The notes below the pieces were generated by a model. That model made no database searches. It was not told the DNA's origin and worked only from the letters and a program-made list of their open reading frames with translations. Both the position numbers and the translations under genes were made by a program. Positions 146-52,259 of a DNA stretch of 64,000 nt are shown one piece after another. Every line of letters starts with the position of its first letter. Position 1 is the stretch's first letter. Source of the stretch: Mantamonas sphyraenae STR306 (taxonomy: Eukaryota; Protista; CRuMs); contig JAPMXV010000032.1 of the NCBI GenBank assembly GCA_026936335.1, positions 1 through 64,000 of the forward strand. Reading direction: 5' to 3'.

Positions 146-428
146 TTGTGACTCTGAATGTAATATTGAATATGCTTTGTTGAGATGAGTCCGGTCTATG
201 TCACGTGAGTTGTGCTTGTGATGGTTGGCTGGGTGGCTGAGTTGGGTGGTGACATGGGGCAGTGGGCAATGGGTGCAAGTGGAAATGTTGCTCGTGAGTG
301 GCCGTTGTCCTGCAATGCCGCGCAGTCAGCACTGCCCTCCCGCCTTCAACAAAAATATCACCAACACCCACAACACCCTCCACCAGGCCAACACAATACA
401 CATACACTCCTGTACCACCACCAGCATC

Positions 429-3400
429 ATGGACAAAGACTACTCAAGCACTCCGAAGCAACTACAAAAACCCAACACCTACCCAGCGTGCGTTTTGCCT
501 TCCACTCCGTTTTCTGACTGCCCGCTTCTCCATCTTCCTTGCCTCCTCCATGTCTCCGTCGCTTCCCTGCACTCCTCACCTGCATCTCCACTTGCCCATC
601 ACCACCGTTGCTGCCTTCTCCGCTCTTCTCCGATCCCCTCTCCCCTGTCACTGCCCTCCCCGTTGCCGGTTTCCCGGTCTGCCAATCTCCTCCGTTTCCC
701 TCTCTGCTCGTTCCAGCCCCTTCACCCCCGCTTCTGCCCTGACGGCGTCCATTCCGCCTTTCGCTCACCGTTGCCACCCCGCGTTGCCCCTCCCCGTTTC
801 CCCCACAGCTACGCGTACATGGTCCCTCCCATGGCTGCCCAGCCGTTCCCGAACATGCTGCCCGTCTCTGGCGTACAAAACTCGTACCAGCACCCACAAC
901 CACCCATCATCTGGGTCCCTGTCAACACCCACCCGCAGCAGCACTCCGCATACGGCCATCACCATCCACACTACGCCTACCCTCCTCCGCCTCCTCCTCA
1001 GCCGCGACAAACCGCCCAGACGCACTTCGCTCAGCCTCCGGTGCACCGTCCGCCTGCTCAACCCACCACAAACCACAACCGCGTCCCCAAACGCATCGGC
1101 CCTGCCTTTGTCGGCATGACACCGACCACATCCACCACCACATCGTCGTCCTCGTCCCACCAGGCCACACAGCAGACTGGAGACAGCGACGACGACGACG
1201 CAGACCAGGGCACAAACATACATGACACCGGCGACGTGGAGGACTTGATGTTCCTGAACTTTGGCCACCGTGAACCACGGTCAACCTCCAGCAAGTCAGA
1301 CTGGATGACCAGCCCAGGGATGGAGGCGTACGACGAAGACGGCGAGGCAAACGACACAACCCAGCAGCATGTGGACGACGAGATGGATACTCGGGGATCA
1401 CTCAACTTCGCAGACACTGATGATGCCATGGATGAGGAGTACATGCCGCAAGACGACAGCGACGACGACACAGCCGACATGGAGCAGGAGGACTCGGACG
1501 AATGTCAGCCAAGGCGCACATGTAGAGGCCACACACGACGACGCAGAGGCCACGCCAGCCGTCGTATTGATCCACAAACGATGAAAGGCAGCGGACAGCG
1601 CAGGCGCAGGGTCACGGTTGGCAGTGGCACAGAGACAGGAACGTCGAGCACACGGGCAAGGAGGGCCAAGAACGGAGACACCGGCGCACGGAAGAAATCA
1701 GTCGTGGACAAGACGAACAAGTTGCCAGATGGAGTTGTGCGCAAAGGGTGGACAGCGAGAAACAGCGACGAGCGCATGCACAGTAACAAGAAGGAGCACA
1801 CGGCACTGCTGAAGCACATGCACACTCTGGCCAACGAGCATCGAATTGACAACATCCCCGACCTGGTGACCCTGCAGGCGCGTGTTGTGGTCTGCCATGG
1901 CACCCTGAACACGCTGGTCCGACAGATTCAGCTCGCTGTGGGCAACCTTCCCCTCTCCCAAGGCGGCATGGCCATGTGCCTCACCCTTCTCGGCCATGAT
2001 GTGGATCAACAGGCGTGCAGCAATGCCATCAAAGACGCTGGTCTAGCCATGGGTGTGACAAAGGCTGGGTTGAAGGTGTGCTGGCTGGAGGAGCCACACG
2101 ACCACGGCGACCCCAACTACGCCCTCCTCCACCTGCTCATGACAGAGATGGACACTCTCGGCAACAGGACCCATCCCACCAGCTGGAAGGAGCACGAGCA
2201 GACCCAGCTGTGGCTGCAGAAAGCACGACGCCCTGCTGACAACGACAGCGACCCACACTGGACACAATGCGACTACGACCACCTCCTCACCACCATCAAG
2301 ATGTACCAGTGGCATCCTGAGTCTGTGCGCAGTGGCTGGGCAGCGCACAGTCCCAACGACGAGCGTGGCAGCTGCACGGCGCTGGAGTTCCAGACGCTGC
2401 TGGCACACATGAAGGCACGCGCAGCCAAGTACCCTCGCCATCAGCACGCACACGAGCTCCAGTCACTGCGTGATCTGATCAACAACGGCAGCAAGATATC
2501 CCTGCTGCGACACATCATGCTGGCGCTGGGCAACGTTGGCGTGCCACCTGTCGACCTGGCCTTCTTTGTCCGCCTCCTCAGGCCACAACTCAACTACCAA
2601 CTAGTTGCCAGTACCATAAGCAACACCCTCACCCGCGGCGTCACCTCCCTGTCCCTCAAGATCGCCTGGCTCGACATCCCCAAACCCAGCGACGCCACAC
2701 TGCACACCCTCCTCCACACTCTCATCGACCGCATCACACCCCACATCACCACCCGTCCCACCACTCCCGCACTCGTCAACGCCCTGTACATCCCCAAGCT
2801 TGTTCTACCCAAACCCACAGAGGAGGAGATGGTGGCCGTGGAGGATGGGCTGCCAGATGGCGTTGTGTGCAGTGGCTGGAAGTCCTGGCGCAAGGGCGAG
2901 CGCATGCACAGAAACAAGAAGGAGCACACCGCTCTGCTGAAGCACATGCACTCCCTGTCCAACGACCATCCCGTGGACGACATCCCAGACCTCATGACCC
3001 TGCAGGCGCGTGTTGTGGTCTGCCATGGCACCCTGTTGACGCTGATCCGACAGATCCTGCTCGCTCTGGACAACATTCCCCTCTCCCAGGGCGACATGGC
3101 CTTCTGCCTCTCCCTTCTCGGCCGTGACATGGATCAACATGCGTGCATCGTTGCCATCACCAACGCTGGTCTGGCCGTGGGTGTGACAGAGGATGGGTTG
3201 AAGGTGTGCTGGCTGGAGGAGCCACACGACCACGGCGACCCCAACTACGCCCTCCTCCACCTGCTCATGACAGAGATGGACACACTTGGCGACAGGCCCC
3301 ATCCCACCACCTGGAAGGAGCACAAGCAGACCAAGCTGTGGCTGCAGGAAGCACGACGCCCTGCTGACAACGACAGCGACCCACACTGGACACAATGTGA

Positions 3401-3998
3401 CTACGACCACCACCTCACCCCCACCGAGGTGGACAAGTGGCATCCCGAGTCTGTGCGCAGTGGCTGGGCAGCGCAGAGAACAAGCGACGAGCGTGGCAGC
3501 TGCACGGCGCTGGAGTTCCAGACGCTGCTGGCACACATGGAGGCACGCGCAGCCAAGCACCCTCGCCATCAGCATGCACGCGAGCACCAGGCACTGCGTG
3601 AGCTGATCAACAACGGTAACCTGCAGTCCCTGCTGCGTCACATCATCCTGGCGCTTGGCAACGTTGGCGTGCCGCCTGTCGATCTGGCCTTCTTTGTCCG
3701 CCTCCTCAGGCCACGACTCACCTACAAGCAGGTGCAAATTGCCATCAAGGACACCCTCACCCGCGGCGTCACCTCCCTCTCCCTCAAAATCGCCTGGCTC
3801 GACAACCCCAAACGCAGCGACGCCACACTGCACACCCTCCTCCACACCCTCATCGACCGCATCACACCCCACATCACCACCCGCCCCACCACTCCCGCTC
3901 TCGTCAACGCCTACCCCATCCCCCCCTTCACCCTCCCCAAGCGCAAAGACCCTTCCTGCTCCTCCTCTACCTCCTCCAAACGCCAACGCCTCGAATGA
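429..3998 (+). CDS. Telomere-adjacent orphan protein, ~1082 aa: Pro/Gln/His-rich, acidic and basic N-terminal region, four winged-helix-like modules, C-terminal NLS; join(429..487,809..3998)
   Basis: Open frame 225-3998. ATG at 429; GC|GTGCGT donor at 488 and CCCCACAG acceptor at 808 are phase-compatible and remove a low-complexity pyrimidine-rich stretch. Internal 376-aa duplication. Ends PKRK...KRQRLE. Confidence 0.8.
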   Translation: MDKDYSSTPKQLQKPNTYPACVLPSTPFSDCPLLHLPCLLHVSVASLHSSPASPLAHHHRCCLLRSSPIPSPLSLPSPLPVSRSANLLRFPLCSFQPLHPRFCPDGVHSAFRSPLPPRVAPPRFPHSYAYMVPPMAAQPFPNMLPVSGVQNSYQHPQPPIIWVPVNTHPQQHSAYGHHHPHYAYPPPPPPQPRQTAQTHFAQPPVHRPPAQPTTNHNRVPKRIGPAFVGMTPTTSTTTSSSSSHQATQQTGDSDDDDADQGTNIHDTGDVEDLMFLNFGHREPRSTSSKSDWMTSPGMEAYDEDGEANDTTQQHVDDEMDTRGSLNFADTDDAMDEEYMPQDDSDDDTADMEQEDSDECQPRRTCRGHTRRRRGHASRRIDPQTMKGSGQRRRRVTVGSGTETGTSSTRARRAKNGDTGARKKSVVDKTNKLPDGVVRKGWTARNSDERMHSNKKEHTALLKHMHTLANEHRIDNIPDLVTLQARVVVCHGTLNTLVRQIQLAVGNLPLSQGGMAMCLTLLGHDVDQQACSNAIKDAGLAMGVTKAGLKVCWLEEPHDHGDPNYALLHLLMTEMDTLGNRTHPTSWKEHEQTQLWLQKARRPADNDSDPHWTQCDYDHLLTTIKMYQWHPESVRSGWAAHSPNDERGSCTALEFQTLLAHMKARAAKYPRHQHAHELQSLRDLINNGSKISLLRHIMLALGNVGVPPVDLAFFVRLLRPQLNYQLVASTISNTLTRGVTSLSLKIAWLDIPKPSDATLHTLLHTLIDRITPHITTRPTTPALVNALYIPKLVLPKPTEEEMVAVEDGLPDGVVCSGWKSWRKGERMHRNKKEHTALLKHMHSLSNDHPVDDIPDLMTLQARVVVCHGTLLTLIRQILLALDNIPLSQGDMAFCLSLLGRDMDQHACIVAITNAGLAVGVTEDGLKVCWLEEPHDHGDPNYALLHLLMTEMDTLGDRPHPTTWKEHKQTKLWLQEARRPADNDSDPHWTQCDYDHHLTPTEVDKWHPESVRSGWAAQRTSDERGSCTALEFQTLLAHMEARAAKHPRHQHAREHQALRELINNGNLQSLLRHIILALGNVGVPPVDLAFFVRLLRPRLTYKQVQIAIKDTLTRGVTSLSLKIAWLDNPKRSDATLHTLLHTLIDRITPHITTRPTTPALVNAYPIPPFTLPKRKDPSCSSSTSSKRQRLE
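1722..3911 (+). repeat. Intragenic tandem duplication with a 1128-bp period (1722-2783 vs 2850-3911)
   Basis: TGCCAGATGG...CTCGTCAACGCC recurs at an exact 1128-bp offset; long stretches are nearly identical at DNA level. Confidence 0.97.
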
Positions 3999-4016
3999 AC
4001 CACCCTTTCATTCCAT

Positions 4017-7000
4017 TCACCCCATCACCTCCCAATCGCCTCCCCGAATCCTCAACAACCGCGCCAGAGGCCCTCCCGTCACCCCAACATCCTCCCTGTC
4101 ACCAGCGCCCCCCAGCACCACCCGGCCCACAATCCGACTGGCAATGCGCACAAACGCTGCCTGTGCACTCATCACCGCCTCATACCCTCCCTCCCGCACC
4201 ATCACAACCTCACCCTTGCCCAGCCTATCCACACGCACCTCCCCTTCCTCCCCCGGCATCACCACCACCCCGTGCTCGCTCCTGTCCCCGCTGCCTTCCA
4301 ACTCCACATCCACACGCTCAAACACAAAGTCCACCGTGTGACACACCGCCTCCAATCCACACACTTGCTCCACCAACCTCTCGTCCCTCCCTCCCACAGC
4401 CACCACTACCTGCCAACGTGCAGGCATCGACCCTACCGCCTCCAATTCCCCCCGGTTGTATCGCACCTCTTGCATCGCCTGCTGGCCCACGTGCACAAAC
4501 AGGCTCCCCGGCCGTACACGTACTCCTTCCTCTTCCTCCCTCGCCCCTAGACGCCCCATCGCAAGCTCCCACTCCTCCAGCGCGCTCTGCAGGTGCAGCT
4601 CCGGAACCTCATCCCCCAGGCTCCCCTTGCTTTCCACACGCACAACCATCCCATCGTCCACCCCTTCTTCGCTCACCTCGTCCACAGATCCCAACGCACG
4701 CCGCTGCGCAAGCTGCTCTAGGTTTTCGTCCGTCGTCGCACTACGCACCCCACGTGCCATCAAACTCATCACCGGTGATCCAGGTGGCGAGTCCTCCTCG
4801 TAAACACTTGCAGTCGACTCGCTGCGTGATGTCGACGCGTCGCTTGCCACAGACGATGCCCCAAGCACGCTGGGGCGCCGTCCCCCACTGCTTCCTCCCG
4901 CAAGCCCTCCCAACCCTCCCAATCGCTCCATCGGAGGGTACATTGCACCCATGTGTTCTTCCTCCAGCAAAATCGGGTACTCGTCGTCTTCTTCCAAATC
5001 CAAGTTCAGCGCAAGCGCAGGCAGCGGTGCAAGCGTTTCCACACCGTCCATGTCTGTCAAAAGATGCTCCAACAGCCCGTTGCCCTCCTGCTCATCTTCG
5101 CCATCCCCTTCCGTCGATCCGTGGCTGTTCTCGCGCGTCCCACGCCGCCGCTGTACAAACCGCTCGTCCGTCGAAAACGAAAACGCTGTGTTTGGAGACC
5201 GCAGCCCGTCCTGGCTCACACGCACCTTACGACGCCGTGGCACAATCTTGGCCAGACCCGGAGTTAGCGGCCCAGCCATCCCGCTGTCTCCTCTCCCACT
5301 TCCCACAGCCTCTTCTGCACCCACACTTTCGTGCAGCAGACACCGTCCACCCATGCCCATGCACGAGCACTGCATCTCCACACTTTCCTTGCCCTGCACT
5401 GCATTGTTCAGCTGGCCCAGCCAACTCAACGTGCCCGTCGCACACACAAACGTCATTTTGAACCAGTTGAACCGCCCACTCATCACATGCACCACCTGCG
5501 AACGACTGCGCCACACCCGGTGCCCTCCCTCCTTCTCGCTCAGCAGCAAATCATTCACCTCTGCGTCTACGTCTGCCTGCTCCAAGCTCACCCACCCGTT
5601 CTCCGTCCCGTACGCCATCCGCAGCACGCTCTCCACCAGCAACTGCCGCTCCGCACTCCGACGTTCCATCTGCTTCACACACACAAGCAACTCCGTCGCC
5701 ACCTGTTCCCTCTCTCCACGCGGTACCAGCGGCATCCAGCACGACAGCATATGCCACGCAAGCCCAAACTCCATCTCCCCCACCTGCTCCCGAATCCACC
5801 GCACAACAGCCCTCGCTCCGGCTCCGCTCCCTCGGCACCCTCCCTGTACACCCACGGCCAAGTGGTACAGGAAATCGTGTACCTGGACTGCGTTGCCCAA
5901 ACGCAGCACCGTCTCAATGTGCTCCAGCACAAGCTCCGGCCAAAACAAACTCATCATCCCCAGCGCCTCTGCGCACAACCCCGCCGCCTCCTCCATCCCG
6001 CTAGCCAGCCCTTGACCCAGCAGCACCAACACTTCTTTGCTCACGGGCTTCGTATGTGCGTCCGCCTCCATCGCCGTCAGCAGGCCCACAATCCCGCGCA
6101 GCGCACAGTATGCCGGCTCACGATCCACAAACGCACGCTGTTGCACATTCATCGCCAGGAACTGGATCAACACAGACAAGTCCACGCTCTTGAACACATA
6201 GTAGCTGTTGATCAGCCCCAGCAGCGCATCCACAAGCTGCCCTTGCCTCGCCCCATGGTCCCGTTCCGCTTGCAGCCGCCGTTGCAACAGCGACGTAAGC
6301 AGCGACACATCCAAGAACCTGTCCTGCATGCTGCTCCGCACGGACAACTTGGGCAACCGCTCGCTGTCCTCCTCGGGCACCACCTGTGCACTGTAAACTG
6401 CGTAGTTTTCGTCTGCACGCAGGTTCACCAGCGCCGTCAGCGCATGCTGGCTCACAGACGCCCGTGGTGCCTCGCACAGACGCAACAGGACACGGTACAG
6501 GTGCAGGCTCATGCTCGGTGGATGCAGCACCAAGTGCCTCTGAAAAGCTTGCACCAGCCGCCTTGCCGCGCTGCTGCTCACCTGCACAAGCTGCAGATCT
6601 GTGCTCAGCGCAAGCGCTTCCAGATACGCCACACACATCTTGAATTGCTCCAAATTCGGCGTCAGCTTCTCCATCGTCTCCTGCACAACCTCCACCATCA
6701 GCGCCACCTCTGCTGCCTCGTGCGTGTGGCCCTCCATGGACGTTGCCTTCATCACCACCCGCAACAAGTTCACATATTCGTCCTCGTAGATGCCCACAAC
6801 CTCGGGCAGAGACGTTCGCAGCACCTCCACCGCCTGTGTGCACGCCCCGTGACTGCGCGCGTCCACCACAAACGCACTCACAAACGCAAACATGTTGTCC
6901 ACCCATGCAGGGTGCCACACGCGCAGTCGCTCCCCAAAGTTCTCCAGGTACATCGTGCACGCCGTCTCGTCCCCTGCCATCAACAGCAGGTGGTGCAGGC

Positions 7001-8253
7001 TTTCCGCCAAGTCGCTCGCCTCGCCCTTGTACTCCCGAAGGTGGATCAGCGAGTGCAGGTGGTCAATGATATCCTGGAACAGCGTCGCAATGTTTGCATG
7101 CTGCTGTGTCAACGGGTGCAGCAGCTCCAGGATGCGTCGCAAAATGTCCCACTCCGCCCCGAGTTCGCTGCCATACTTGCGGATCAAACGATTCAGCGCA
7201 AGCAGCACTTCGTAGCACAAGATCGCTTGTGTGTGCTTCACGGCCGCCAGCATCGCCGGCAACACGCACGAGAATTTCAGGTGCTCATCCGCGACTCTTT
7301 GCGACCCCCAGCTGGCCATCCCCAGAAAATACACTGCACCACGCAACTGCGACAGTGCTTCCTGTTGGTGTCGCTTGCTGCAATCACACACACACACACA
7401 CAATTGACCACACACACACCTTCCGTGTCAGCTTTCCGCGCATGCCGTTTCGCACCTGCTCCCCCTCCTTGCCCCCCGTCCGCGCTACCCACCTCTTGCT
7501 GCTTGCCTGAAGCGTCCGAGTCAGCACCTGCGTCGTTTTGTACTTGTAGTCCGACTGCAACAGGGTGCGCATCACCTTCCAGCTGTGCTGCGAAAGCTCC
7601 TGCAGGTTGATCGCCACGCACAGCACAAGCACCACTTGCTCCAGCGCCCTGTGTGGCACGTAGGGCTGGTTGGCCGCCAGATTCAGCACAGACAAGCACT
7701 GGTTGGCCACTGTGTTCAGCTTGTCATAGTACACCGAACACACACGCTCCAGCAGCTGCGTCAGCGCCAGAATGAGCGGTCCCAGCGTGTCCCTGTGCTT
7801 GTTCAGAGCCAGACATTGCGCCACGTCCGACAACAACGTCAGAGCCATGTCCACTCCTTCCGCTTGCGTCATCGACGGCGCCTGTACAAAGAACGACTGC
7901 AGGATCGTCGCCACCAGTGCGGGATCCTGGCCCAGATCCACGTAGTTGTTTGTCAGCAGCCGAACCGCCTTCAGCCTCAATGTCAGCTCCCCCCGCCCGG
8001 CTGCCTCGATGTCCTCTGCAATGCGCAGTCGCAGCTGCTCCTTGATTCCCGAGTGCTGATATTGCAGCAGAAGAAAGAGCAGCGACCACCCAAACCTCGC
8101 CAATTCCAACGACTCCTCCTGGATCAGGTCATGCAGCGCCTCCCACACAGCCCCGACGTCCTCCACACTCTCTTCTTTCAACTGTGGAATAAATGCCTGG
8201 ATGGCCCGCAGCCTAGCTTCCGTGGTCGGCGGGCCCAGCTCGTCCACGTCCAT
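4017..8253 (-). CDS. TSC2: Tuberin (TSC2) homolog, ~1373 aa, with a degenerate RapGAP domain; complement(join(4017..7377,7493..8253))
   Basis: INLQELSQHSWKVMRTLL, LRGAVYFLGMASWG and YEVLLALNRLIRKY...EWDIL match tuberin N-terminal motifs (INVKELCEPCWKLMRNLL, LRGAVFFVGMALWG). GT-AG intron 7378-7492 joins two ORFs in frame. Confidence 0.9.
7385..7419 (+). repeat. Intronic (CA)n microsatellite
   Basis: cacacacacacacaca tracts in the TSC2 intron; similar CA/GT tracts near 14210, 15020, 43590 and 52990. Confidence 0.8.
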
Positions 8254-50186: not shown

Positions 50187-51179
50187 TCAGCTCCTCACTG
50201 TGGTTTTCCCATTGCTGTCGACATCTTTCGGCTCGAGATCGTCGAACGGGATGCCGTTCTCTTTCAACCTTGCCTTCAGCCTGTCGATGTGCATGCGCGC
50301 GTTTGTGATGGCTACCGCGTGATTAAACTGGATGGTTTGAAGCTCCTGATGCAGCTCTTCCACTTCGCTCTCGTGGACAGGCAGCGGAATCGATCCCTGC
50401 TCGCTCAGCATCTCCTCCGTCAAGCTCTTGCGCGTGCTTGTGCCGCCGAGGCCTGCCCGTGTGTCTGATTGGGTGGTGCTGGTGCTCGTACTCGTTGTGC
50501 TGCTGGCTCCCGAGCTCTCATTGGTCCCTGCACCGCTGATGCGCACTCTTCTCGCACGGACCTGGGCTCTCAGCATCTCCACCATACTTGAGTGCCTCGT
50601 GCTCGTCTCGGCCTCTTGAGTCGTCGAAGAGCTGCCCTGCCCTGCTCCCACCCCTGTTCGCACAGACGATAGCAGACTCGAGCTTGTTTCTGGCCCTGAC
50701 GTGTCGCTAGAGTCGCCTGAAGAGGTTTGCGAGGCAGGCTGTTCTCCTTCGGAGAGGAGCACCCCGAGCAGCTCACCCAGCGAGTCGCTGTTTCTGCTTT
50801 CCAGACTCTGTTGCCTCACAAGGCCCAACACACTCGGTCGCACCCATGTCGACTCCCGGGTCCTCGAGTTGTAGAAGTACGGGCGATTGGAGGTGGGATC
50901 GCGGTACTCTGTCCATTCGTCGTCGTTGTGGCCTGTGGGATCCACTGTGCCCGGCAAGTCCCTTGCGCTCCACGCGGCCTCGTTTGTGAATCTGTTCAGG
51001 AAGTATGTGCGTCCGCTGTGGTCGCACATCTTGGCCCAGCCTGCCAACTTTTGCTGGCGCGTCAGCGAATACTGCTCTGGCGACTCCCAATCCTCCACGT
51101 CAGGTTCAGAGAGGTCCAGTCGCAGATCATCTTCATCCTCACTTCCGCTGTCGCTGTAACTGTCGTATGCGAAGGACAT
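50187..51179 (-). CDS. Tandem WW-domain protein with C-terminal coiled coil
   Basis: GWAKMCDHSGRTYFLNRFTNEAAW and WTEYRDPTSNRPYFYNSRTRESTWVRP. Confidence 0.9.
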   Translation of the reverse strand: MSFAYDSYSDSGSEDEDDLRLDLSEPDVEDWESPEQYSLTRQQKLAGWAKMCDHSGRTYFLNRFTNEAAWSARDLPGTVDPTGHNDDEWTEYRDPTSNRPYFYNSRTRESTWVRPSVLGLVRQQSLESRNSDSLGELLGVLLSEGEQPASQTSSGDSSDTSGPETSSSLLSSVRTGVGAGQGSSSTTQEAETSTRHSSMVEMLRAQVRARRVRISGAGTNESSGASSTTSTSTSTTQSDTRAGLGGTSTRKSLTEEMLSEQGSIPLPVHESEVEELHQELQTIQFNHAVAITNARMHIDRLKARLKENGIPFDDLEPKDVDSNGKTTVRS

Positions 51180-51237
51180 GGGACAAGTTGGCAGCCGATC
51201 CGCGACACCCAGCCCAACTCTTCCAGTGGTCATTGTC

Positions 51238-52259
51238 ATGTCCAGCATGCAGGCAAACAACCTCAAGCTGCTGCAGCTTATGTTGCAGCAGTCTGAGACG
51301 CTGAACAGTGTGCAGAGCAGCAACAGCAGCAAGCGAAGCGCCATGGCTTCGGTGGACTCCGCGCTGCTCTCCAAGCGCAAAGAACATGCCCAGCTCAAGC
51401 AGCGCGTGGAAGCAGCACAGCGCAGCATTACATTGCGCGACTCCATTGTCAAGGAGCTGCAACAGGTCGACATGGACCAGGGGTCCGCCTTGGACGAGGC
51501 TGCGAGCAAGTTGCGCAAGAAGAGCCGCAAGCGCAAGCTAGAAGAGGTGCAGATCGCCTATCGTCTGACAGGAAAGACCATCTTCCACTTGGAGAATGGG
51601 CGCATTGGGGTGCGCCTCGAAACCATGGACAATGGTGTGTGACGTGTGGTGCCTTGGCGCCAAAATTTTTCTCGTGTGCACAACCTCTTCACAACGCCCC
51701 GCCTCTCACACACTTCCCTTTGCCCACAGGCCAGTACCACGAAACTTATTACGTCATTCTTGACTATGACCACACCAAGGAGCGCCTGGTTGTGTACCGT
51801 CACTCGCTGCCGCACTTTGTGCCCGTTGCCACCTTGGCCCGCAGACACCTCAACCGTGACGTGCACCATTTCCTCGACCACATCTCCCAGTATCTGAATG
51901 CCTATGTGTGTCGACGTGAGCAACTCCACGAGCTCCACCTGGCCCATGGCCGCGGCAAAGGCCGCAGGGTTTCCAGCCTGCTCGCTTCGCAGTCATTCAA
52001 CCAGGTGGAGTTTGTTGGGCGTGCTGCAGACACAGAGCTCCAAGTCCGCCTCCTGTACAAAGAATTGCGCCACACGCGTCCCAGCCACGTCTCGGTCAAG
52101 GCACGCTCTCTCAGCGCTGATCAGGGCGCCGACTACCTCGACGCAAAGCGGCAGCCCGCCAGCAAACGACGCCACCTCGTCCAATCTGCACGTTCACATT
52201 TCAAGCGACAGCGTGTAGGCGAGGCCATGGATGCAGTGGTGGAGCTGAGTGAGGAATGA
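51238..52259 (+). CDS. CENPO: Centromere protein O (CENP-O/Mcm21); join(51238..51634,51730..52259)
   Basis: Coiled coil, then AYRLTG.T, IGVRLET...G.Y.E.YYVIL, V.RHSLP.FVP, L..YLNAYV.RREQ. Confidence 0.92.

Follow-up and report, generated by a model that had tools for sequence, protein, structure and literature searches.

A terminal element with a modular, hypervariable gene family at the chromosome ends of Mantamonas sphyraenae

Contig JAPMXV010000032.1 of the Mantamonas sphyraenae STR306 assembly opens with telomere repeats, and a long gene lies close behind them. What kind of gene is this, and is it particular to this chromosome end? A first-pass annotation, made from the letters of the first 64,000 nucleotides of the contig (the whole stretch analysed, hereafter the window), had proposed a telomere-adjacent orphan protein composed of four winged-helix-like modules. 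The basic layout was recovered as described. An unstranded (CCCTAA)x24 telomere repeat occupies positions 1-145 at the contig start (period 6, 24.2 copies, 99% matches), the open reading frame runs on the + strand from an ATG at 429 to a TGA at 3996-3998, and the peptides that had been quoted from it were found at their places. The gene starts ~430 bp from the contig end and 283 bp from the telomere repeats, and it is transcribed away from the telomere.

The DNA between the repeats and the gene consists of two parts, both read here on the + strand. The distal part (146-339) is terminal-specific, being confined to telomere-adjacent copies, while the proximal part (340-428), which includes a AAAAATAT box at ~352-359, is common to terminal and internal copies. 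In internal copies homology begins at window position ~335-340, that is, without the terminal-specific leader. Nucleotide diversity (pi) in the paralogue alignment was 0.094 in the proximal leader (340-428) versus 0.20 in the distal one, and the proximal leader may comprise the core promoter and 5′ UTR. On the other side of the gene, homology to 20/20 other ends breaks off between 3999 and 4066, just past the stop codon. This interval is the unstranded proximal boundary of the shared element: identity is 88-89% over window positions 1-~4000, and none of it extends past 4066. Unique DNA starts here, including a TSC2-like gene on the - strand, and no poly(A) tract was found at the boundary or after the stop codon. 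Window positions 1-~4010 are one copy of a terminal element in which the telomere repeats are followed by a conserved leader of 283 bp and then by a gene with one intron.

The distribution of this element was examined across the genome (25 Mb, 78 contigs, about 156 ends), and the full sequence was read for 20 further contig starts and 15 short loci. Each of these contig starts carried the ~3.9-kb element with telomere, leader and gene (21/21 with the window), as did every end examined, which bears out the earlier suggestion of a subtelomeric multigene family or telomere-associated element to be checked against other chromosome ends. A search with the terminal-specific leader gave 132 first-look matches against about 156 ends, and the whole leader gave 159 candidates. 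The 40 terminal-leader candidates that were scored all lay ~150-520 bp from contig ends at 87-92% identity, and near-terminal matches were oriented + at contig starts and - at contig ends. The element is present at essentially every, or nearly every, chromosome end of this genome. Searches with the A-B unit and the N-terminal part returned 406 and 333 candidates, respectively, and all 109 scored unit matches were 78-95% identical and stop-free. These matches place the gene in a lineage-restricted family with well over 100 members, which probably makes up a few percent of the genome as a rough estimate from candidate counts. The label of orphan accordingly stands outside this genome and fails within it, as over 100 paralogous units occur there. 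Most copies carry two A-B units, and some of those read carry one or three, giving 2-6 modules per protein in the copies read. Tandem copies also occur internally, with no telomere repeats in between, and the length of open frames suggests that longer internal arrays exist as well, for instance on contig C29 at 75-97 kb.

The gene is interrupted by a single intron. Exon 1 (429-487, + strand) is 59 nt long in 19/19 parsed copies, with a conserved ATG context. It is followed on the same strand by an intron reading GTGCGT...CACAG (488-808; 321 nt in the window copy) and by exon 2, which includes the stop codon (809-3998), so that the spliced product has 1,082 aa and not 1,189. Neither the GTGCGT donor nor the AG that closes the acceptor varies among copies. 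Intron length varies from 319 to 330 nt and is not a multiple of 3 in 13/20 copies, and several paralogues contain in-frame stops inside the intron. All examined copies have kept the intron, and no intronless (spliced) copy was found in the assembly. The full frame is retained in 16/19 spliced models, with the conserved tail. Paralogues differ by indels in multiples of 3, apart from frameshifts in two copies and an alignment artefact at 876. Additional support came from the public run X4, which the tool tagged 'DNA?', its RNA nature being our inference. Its contigs join 485/487 to 809/814, with the junction at 487|809, and intron depth is 10-35 times below that of the exons. No contig of this run falls on 146-344, depth starting in the bin 345-543, and an exact 172-nt piece lies at 2844-3015. 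Based on this one RNA-like run, the gene family is apparently expressed and its intron spliced.

Translation of the spliced gene on the + strand revealed a Pro/Gln/His/Tyr-rich low-complexity region (810-1178, pi 0.067), an acidic region with a conserved EDLMFLNF (1179-1502) and an Arg-rich basic region with the motifs RRRRG, QRRRR and RARRAK (1503-1724). The acidic and Arg-rich segments had been correctly noted upstream of the modules, whereas part of the reported Pro-rich segment is the intron at 488-808 read in frame. Next come, again on the + strand, module A (1725-2315) and module B (2316-2852) of unit 1, and module A (2853-3443) and module B (3444-3947) of unit 2, each module being about 180-197 aa long. 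The protein ends in a conserved tail of the form LPKRK-x-P-(S)n-KRQRLE (3933-3995, + strand). This tail, predicted earlier to be a bipartite nuclear localization signal (NLS), is indeed present and conserved in 16/16 full-length paralogues (with RR replacing KRK in one of them), with the lowest pi of any region (0.062). Given the Arg-rich block and this NLS-like tail, the proteins would be nuclear; no signal peptide or membrane anchor was found in the protein.

The A-B-A'-B' architecture was confirmed, since the two units (1725-2852 and 2853-3995) are 79% identical over 363 aa without gaps, and module A (1725-2315) shares 30% identity with module B (2316-2852), which is above chance (E 1e-14). 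The duplication of 376 aa proposed by the first-pass annotation is therefore real, but it is not recent. At alignment column 7 every first unit has K (30/30) and every second unit has S (26/26), and such fixed diagnostic residues across paralogues indicate that the duplication is common to the whole family and predates its expansion.

Comparison of the copies provided insights into the selection acting on these modules. Pi was 0.077 at 0-fold sites, 0.122 at 4-fold sites and 0.100 in the intron, and the 0-fold/4-fold ratio was 0.63 overall and 0.80 in the N-terminal part. Scaffold windows displayed pN/pS values of 0.1-0.3, and by this comparison the scaffold is under purifying selection. Where the annotation had considered an unexpressed single copy with no purifying selection between repeats, we found a family, an RNA-like run and a constrained scaffold. 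Meanwhile, 23 hypervariable codons per unit displayed a pN of 0.458, versus 0.081 elsewhere. This value compares with 0.12 for pi at 4-fold sites, 0.10 for the intron and 0.17 for global pS, and amounts to 2.3-3.0 times global pS and 3-4 times the neutral-site rate. Taken by themselves, the hypervariable codons have a pN/pS of just 1.06 (bootstrap 0.83-1.41), so the case for positive selection depends on the comparison with neutral sites in other parts of the gene, and local hypermutation may be an alternative cause of the variable codons.

The hypervariable codons lie at two fixed places in each module, all on the + strand. The first is a loop that follows an invariant GW (1752-1769 in A1, 2340-2357 in B1, 2880-2897 in A2 and 3468-3485 in B2), which displays up to 17 different residues per column among 57 units and a pN of 0.39-0.56. 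The second is a predicted helix 3 (2010-2036 in A1, reading QACSNAIKD; 2586-2624 in B1; 3138-3164 in A2; 3714-3752 in B2). Here the variable columns 97, 100, 101, 104 and 105 are interspersed with residues that change little or not at all (D, Q, A, C, A, I, A, G and L), and pN is 0.47 at the variable columns versus 0.11 at the remaining positions. The variable codons of this helix are spaced i, i+3/4 and i+7/8, as on one helix face.

Based on these findings, we postulate, with a probability of about 70%, that the locus is one copy of a universal terminal element that carries a lineage-restricted, modular and hypervariable family of presumed nuclear recognition proteins. The modules would be recognition units, with the variable positions of helix 3 and the GW loop forming the binding surface. 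Their subtelomeric position would allow ectopic recombination to spread copies and to reshuffle them between ends, and selection would keep the binding residues diverse.

The alternative that survives best, although we regard it as unlikely, is a selfish subtelomeric element comparable to Y', spread by recombination or break-induced replication. Its open reading frame would serve the element itself or telomere maintenance upon telomerase failure, and the variable sites would be a relaxed surface. The occupation of every examined end in a single orientation, the sharp boundaries, the internal tandem copies and the weak mean constraint expressed by the 0-fold/4-fold ratios of 0.63 and 0.80 are all in keeping with such an element. 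Relaxation alone is nevertheless insufficient for codons that vary about 3-fold above the neutral rate, and no helicase or any other enzymatic domain was found. The earlier observation that nuclease, transposase and reverse transcriptase (RT) motifs are absent agrees with Pfam, which found no domain in the 1,189-aa unspliced translation (helicase, nuclease, transposase, RT, endonuclease (EN) and Gag included). Furthermore, the copies are about 88-89% identical to one another, and a divergence of ~11% with few long identical tracts is unlike elements under active copying. Identical tracts of 178-281 nt were present in only a few copy pairs, and the longest identical run between copies had a median of 79 nt, compared with 53 nt upon shuffling. 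Gene conversion was hence rejected as a strong current homogeniser, and the rarity of long identical tracts suggests that the ends now exchange sequence only weakly or did so long ago.

On the fold of the modules the first-pass annotation, which had likened their core to the winged helix of ArgR, was not upheld. The AlphaFold2 (AF2) model of module B is all-alpha, with helices at residues 22-38, 45-57, 60-71, 78-88, 94-108 and 127-143 (pLDDT 74.6 and pTM 0.76 in the best model; 1/5 models confident), while that of a whole A-B unit is of low confidence (pLDDT 48.6). No strands that could form a beta-hairpin wing are present in the module model, and residues 107-119 of module B (GVTSLSLKIAWLD), the putative wing, are disordered (pLDDT <50). 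Foldseek found no significant match for the module model in the PDB or BFVD, so that the proposed check on single modules did not recover a winged helix, and a structure search of the ESM Atlas gave TM values of at most 0.36. VIA-align gave a best Z of 3.8, which lies under the level that the tool itself gives as noise. Among the top 50 of these sub-threshold matches, ~30 are helix-turn-helix (HTH) or winged-helix entries by our own count of entry titles, aligned to model residues ~55-120. Helices 60-71, 78-88 and 94-108 superpose on many such chains at sub-noise Z values of 2.7-3.8, with an rmsd of 1.7-2.5 Å over 46-56 residues for chains of the RecX, Hop2, Fur, Stn1 and BlaI type. The hypervariable codons fall in the third of these three HTH-aligned helices. 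Together, the abundance of HTH entries among sub-noise matches and the variable third helix make an HTH-like core in the predicted model possible but unproven.

Pfam profiles matched no HTH or winged-helix family in 74 modules at E values up to 10, and a PDB profile search returned FOXP3 alone (E 1.2), on another part of the module. Word-index searches with the unit and with residues 433-1189 found no homologue, and a scan of JGI metagenomes found no relatives. Against 1.84 billion representatives, a profile search produced a single hit, P0001, which was judged spurious, being a low-complexity TLHHLLTHLKSL repeat protein. The first of two feature-similarity atlas searches returned nothing, and the second returned clusters of DNA-ligase N-terminal domains by similarity of language-model features (score 0.94; recognition 1620, below the useful level). 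The N-terminal DNA-binding domain of ATP-dependent DNA ligases (PF04675) was rejected, as it had no HMM hit and no ligase occurred among the fold matches. Literature searches on subtelomeres and telomeres, centred on Corallochytrium, and on genomes of 78 chromosomes turned up no account of this family. The family is apparently restricted to this species, no relatives having been found outside this genome, and as the organism's own proteins are absent from the libraries searched, close sister taxa may be absent from them too.

These results weigh on a second alternative, in which the modules are true DNA-binding domains of the ArgR-like winged-helix type, with telomeric or subtelomeric DNA as the target of the protein. 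The many HTH and winged-helix titles on helices 60-108, the variable residues within the third helix and the basic and NLS-like segments speak for it. We nonetheless consider it improbable, given Z values that never exceed 3.8, the lack of predicted strands and of a profile match and, for a binder of telomere repeats, the fact that more than 100 divergent recognition surfaces would not be needed. Lastly, a HeT-A-type telomere-targeted retroelement, encoding a Gag-like protein only with RT supplied in trans, would account for the occupied ends and for a uniform orientation with the 5′ end distal, as in telomeric non-LTR elements, but is very improbable and largely refuted by the intron kept in every examined copy, the absence of a spliced copy from the assembly, of poly(A) at the proximal boundary and of telomere repeats between tandem copies, and the lack of an RT, EN or Gag profile match.

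Returning to the terminal element with its presumed recognition proteins, nucleic acid is our leading though tentative candidate for the ligand of the modules; a protein or other ligand ranks behind it, and for the remainder, a smaller share, we cannot say. The family might even represent a new class of diversifying modular sequence-recognition proteins, although this seems improbable to us. In such a class, helical modules of ~190 aa would read DNA or RNA by an HTH-type helix face and the GW loop, and the genes would be kept at all ~156 telomeres for the new specificities that recombination continually makes, for instance to counter mobile elements or viruses or to mark individual ends. Modules that bind nucleic acid with a readable code, if this is true, would be of engineering interest. 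The family would escape standard homology-based annotation. Universal protein-coding terminal elements are rare, and here the same apparently expressed gene seems to end each examined chromosome of a compact protist genome. This offers a tractable system for studying the origin and upkeep of protein diversity at subtelomeres other than in host-parasite antigen families, and for asking whether the ends of chromosomes code for factors that bind to them.

The element is reminiscent of yeast Y' and fungal TLH/UTASa, which are likewise coding elements adjoining telomere repeats at many ends, highly similar and sometimes in tandem. Y' and TLH, however, encode helicases and sit at some ends, whereas this gene has no known domain, occurs at every examined end and contains hypervariable codons. 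A preprint on Aurantiochytrium describes a subtelomeric rDNA unit at essentially every chromosome end (bioRxiv 10.1101/2023.06.15.545109). Such universal subtelomeric rDNA, as in Encephalitozoon, Aurantiochytrium and nucleomorphs, resembles the present case in placing one unit at essentially all ends, with the difference that the genes there are for rRNA and the gene here is a protein-coding orphan.

As a large chromosome-end family with a conserved scaffold and diversified patches, it also resembles var of Plasmodium, VSG and RHS of Trypanosoma, MSG of Pneumocystis and FLO/EPA of yeasts. It differs from these in having no signal peptide or membrane anchor, in its nuclear-type signals and in being unrelated in sequence, although trypanosome RHS proteins are nuclear. 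In contrast to variant-gene clusters, a copy stands at an almost constant distance from the telomere, in most cases alone and sometimes in a short tandem array. At the level of the module, ArgR, Fur, BlaI, E2F and the C-terminal domain of Stn1 are comparable in a possible three-helix core with the most variable residues in the third helix, which holds the recognition residues of HTH proteins. Winged-helix domains differ from a module of ~180-197 aa, which is far larger and has no predicted wing, no profile match and a Z of at most 3.8. In organization there is a parallel with TALE repeats, KRAB zinc fingers and PPR/PUF proteins, in which tandem modules also combine an invariant scaffold with a few hypervariable positions at fixed places; the modules of the Mantamonas family are 5-6 times longer than theirs and number only 2-6 per protein read, and their recognition function is putative.

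The gene next to the telomere (429-3998, + strand) follows 24 copies of the CCCTAA repeat (1-145) and a leader of 283 bp. The first-pass annotation had described it as an orphan, and hundreds of copies of its family proved to lie inside this genome (25.06 Mb in 78 contigs, hence 156 ends). A search with the 376-aa A-B unit, present twice in the gene, gave 406 first-look candidates, and all 109 that were scored displayed 78-95% identity with no internal stops. The N-terminal part of the protein gave 333 candidates, the leader 159, and its terminal-specific stretch (146-339) 132; all scored leader candidates were no more than a few hundred bases away from a contig end. The gene was found in 20 of the 20 further contig starts read, with 88-89% identity between the window copy and other ends from the telomere to just beyond the stop codon, and homology among the ends stops between 3999 and 4066. 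Thus, the suggested comparison against chromosome ends returned, at contig starts, a shared element, in agreement with the proposal of a subtelomeric family and telomere-associated element.

Near-terminal copies occupy the + strand where a contig begins and the - strand where it ends, and therefore the gene always reads away from the telomere. At some ends a second copy follows in tandem; a spacer of ~150-200 bp, devoid of telomere repeats, separates the two, and the second begins at the equivalent of ~335-340 in the window. This places the repeated unit at ~340-4045 and makes 146-339 particular to the terminal copy. Among the copies read, each contained one to three A-B units. Judged from its open frames (1,902, 2,172, and 3,224 aa), an internal cluster at G000:C29:75000-97000 (including L009, 74137-78264) would consist of arrays with many more units than the usual two. 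Of its paralogues, the window copy is closest to L002, a second, internal copy on another contig (G000:C27:4001-8128), with 95% identity in the unit 1 protein and 91.7% in DNA, compared to the usual 88-89%; the two ends may thus have exchanged sequence more recently. At one end alone (L023, G000:C8:1-8000), ~700 bp (~175-850) separate the telomere repeats from the leader, beginning with tandem ~27-bp units that are AACCCAGAATAGCTTAGAGAAAGCCA-like.

The open frame runs from the ATG at 429 to the TGA at 3996-3998 and comprises two exons (429-487 and 809-3998). In an alignment of 20 copies (the window and 19 other contig starts), the segment 488-808 always starts with GTGCGT and ends with AG, in most cases CACAG. 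Its length varies from 319 to 330 nt, is not divisible by three in 13 of the 20 copies, and several paralogues have in-frame stops inside it, flanked by conserved exon sequence. Joining 487 to 809 restores a single frame in 16/19 copies. The spliced products are 1,078-1,089 aa in two-unit copies (1,082 aa in the window), 707 aa in a one-unit copy, and 1,458 aa in a three-unit copy. All 16 full-frame copies carry LPKRK..(S)n..KRQRLE, or a slight variation on it, at the C-terminus, which upholds the nuclear-type features noted at first reading. No Pfam domain was found in the window's family protein. In the remaining three terminal copies, at the starts of C11 (L026), C19 (L034), and C8 (L023), the frame is cut at 159-226 aa; the alignments of L026 and L034 display frameshifting deletions of 2 nt at ~1688 and 8 nt at ~1238 (window coordinates). 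These three copies are probably pseudogenes or sequencing errors.

Contigs from four public sequencing runs were aligned to the window. Runs X1-X3 covered leader, intron, and exons alike, whereas run X4 had zero contigs over 146-344 and an intron depth lower by 10-35 times. X4 contigs connect 485/487 with 809/814, matching the predicted junction as it appears in paralogue variants, and an exact 172-nt piece of X4 matches 2844-3015. Since a search of the assembly for the spliced junction, tolerating as many as 3 mismatches, gave 0 matches and thus no intronless copy, X4 most likely contains cDNA. We infer from this that the gene is expressed, the kind of run being a tool's guess (labelled 'DNA?'). 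Over 146-6100, X4 behaved like a transcriptome despite that label; its longest record is 20 kb. It also displayed a 240-nt skip in the acidic region (1200-1441), which may reflect either a second splice or a length difference among paralogues.

The repeats are real. The two units (1725-2852 and 2853-3995) share 79% identity across an ungapped stretch of 363 residues, and module A (1725-2315) shares 30% with module B (2316-2852; E 1e-14). Identity between pairs of 57 units had a median of 81% (range 76-95%), with values of 81.6% between first units, 84.4% between second units, and 80.4% between first and second units. Some residues are fixed by position: at alignment column 7, all 30 first units have K and all 26 second units have S. 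The duplication had been taken as recent; these diagnostic residues indicate instead that the A-B-A'-B' layout was ancestral, predating the family.

Diversity (pi) was 0.077 at 0-fold sites, 0.122 at 4-fold sites, 0.100 in the intron, and 0.138 in the leader (distal part 0.20, proximal part 0.094). The selective constraint anticipated earlier was evident, as the Nei-Gojobori dN/dS of 0.57 overall falls to 0.1-0.3 in scaffold windows. Coding indels are multiples of three, except for one alignment artefact at 876 and the frameshifts in two copies. By a rough estimate, neutral evolution at ~5% change per copy would have introduced several stop codons into the 3.2 kb, so the intact frames of 16/19 copies argue for selection. 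Variation clusters in helix 3 of each module and also in the loop that follows the invariant GW. Helix 3 of module A reads D-Q-x-A-C-x-x-A-I-x-x-A-G-L, with up to 12 different residues at the x positions and the same periodicity in module B; this i, i+3/4, i+7/8 spacing is as would be expected of one helix face. At 23 hypervariable codons pN is 0.458 versus 0.081 elsewhere, or 2.3-3.0 times the global pS, but pN/pS inside these codons is 1.06 (0.83-1.41). We read this pattern as diversifying selection, the alternative being local hypermutation at the same codons. Long identical tracts shared between copies are rare, hence homogenisation is not strong at present.

No relatives outside this genome were found by word-index searches or in the JGI metagenomes, a PDB sequence search gave no significant match to the modules, and a 74-module profile run against 1.84 billion representatives had one match, low-complexity and spurious; as the searched libraries apparently lack this organism's own proteins, the negative result carries less weight than the size of the searches implies. 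AF2 gave low confidence for the A-B unit (pLDDT 48.6). The check on a single module fared better, as module B, modelled from an alignment of 74 A and B modules, reached pLDDT 74.6 and pTM 0.76 in the best of five models (the others 41-50). Foldseek returned no match to it among PDB and viral models, and the ESM-Atlas structure search gave TM ≤0.36. The predicted structure is all-alpha, with the proposed wing (residues 107-119) disordered, and the highest Z that VIA-align reached over 48,161 chains was 3.8, below noise by the tool's own standard; the winged-helix fold is therefore not demonstrated. Judged by entry titles, about 30 of the best 50 VIA rows, all sub-noise, represent HTH or winged-helix domains (CRP/FNR, Rrf2, Fur/PerR, BlaI/MecI, GntR, E2F8, Hop2, MCM, the Stn1 C-terminal domain, ScpB, SAMD1, and a homeodomain). 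Their alignments all fall on model helices 60-108, the third of which is the hypervariable one, hinting at a possible HTH-like core. A DNA ligase N-terminal domain, proposed as a language-model neighbour, found no confirmation in HMM or fold searches.

The family gene converges with a TSC2/tuberin-like gene (4017-7415, - strand; Pfam DUF3384, tuberin-type, E 3e-11), whose ORF ends ~19 bp from the family stop codon. X4 depth falls at 4126-4324, possibly because of an intron close to the 3′ end of this gene. Over the first ~28 kb (1-28000), GC skew is strongly negative (-0.1 to -0.44, the + strand being C-rich), whichever strand bears the long ORFs. The DNA is 60% GC, and both strands show long spurious ORFs, such as 5331-7610 (+) opposite the TSC2-like gene. 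An ORF at 50187-51533 (- strand) contains a WW domain (E 1.4e-14), and seven other long window ORFs had no Pfam match.

Collectively, these findings most likely reflect a universal subtelomeric family, apparently expressed, whose modular recognition proteins evolve under diversifying selection. A retroelement is largely excluded, and the main rival to this family of recognition proteins is a selfish element similar to Y'.
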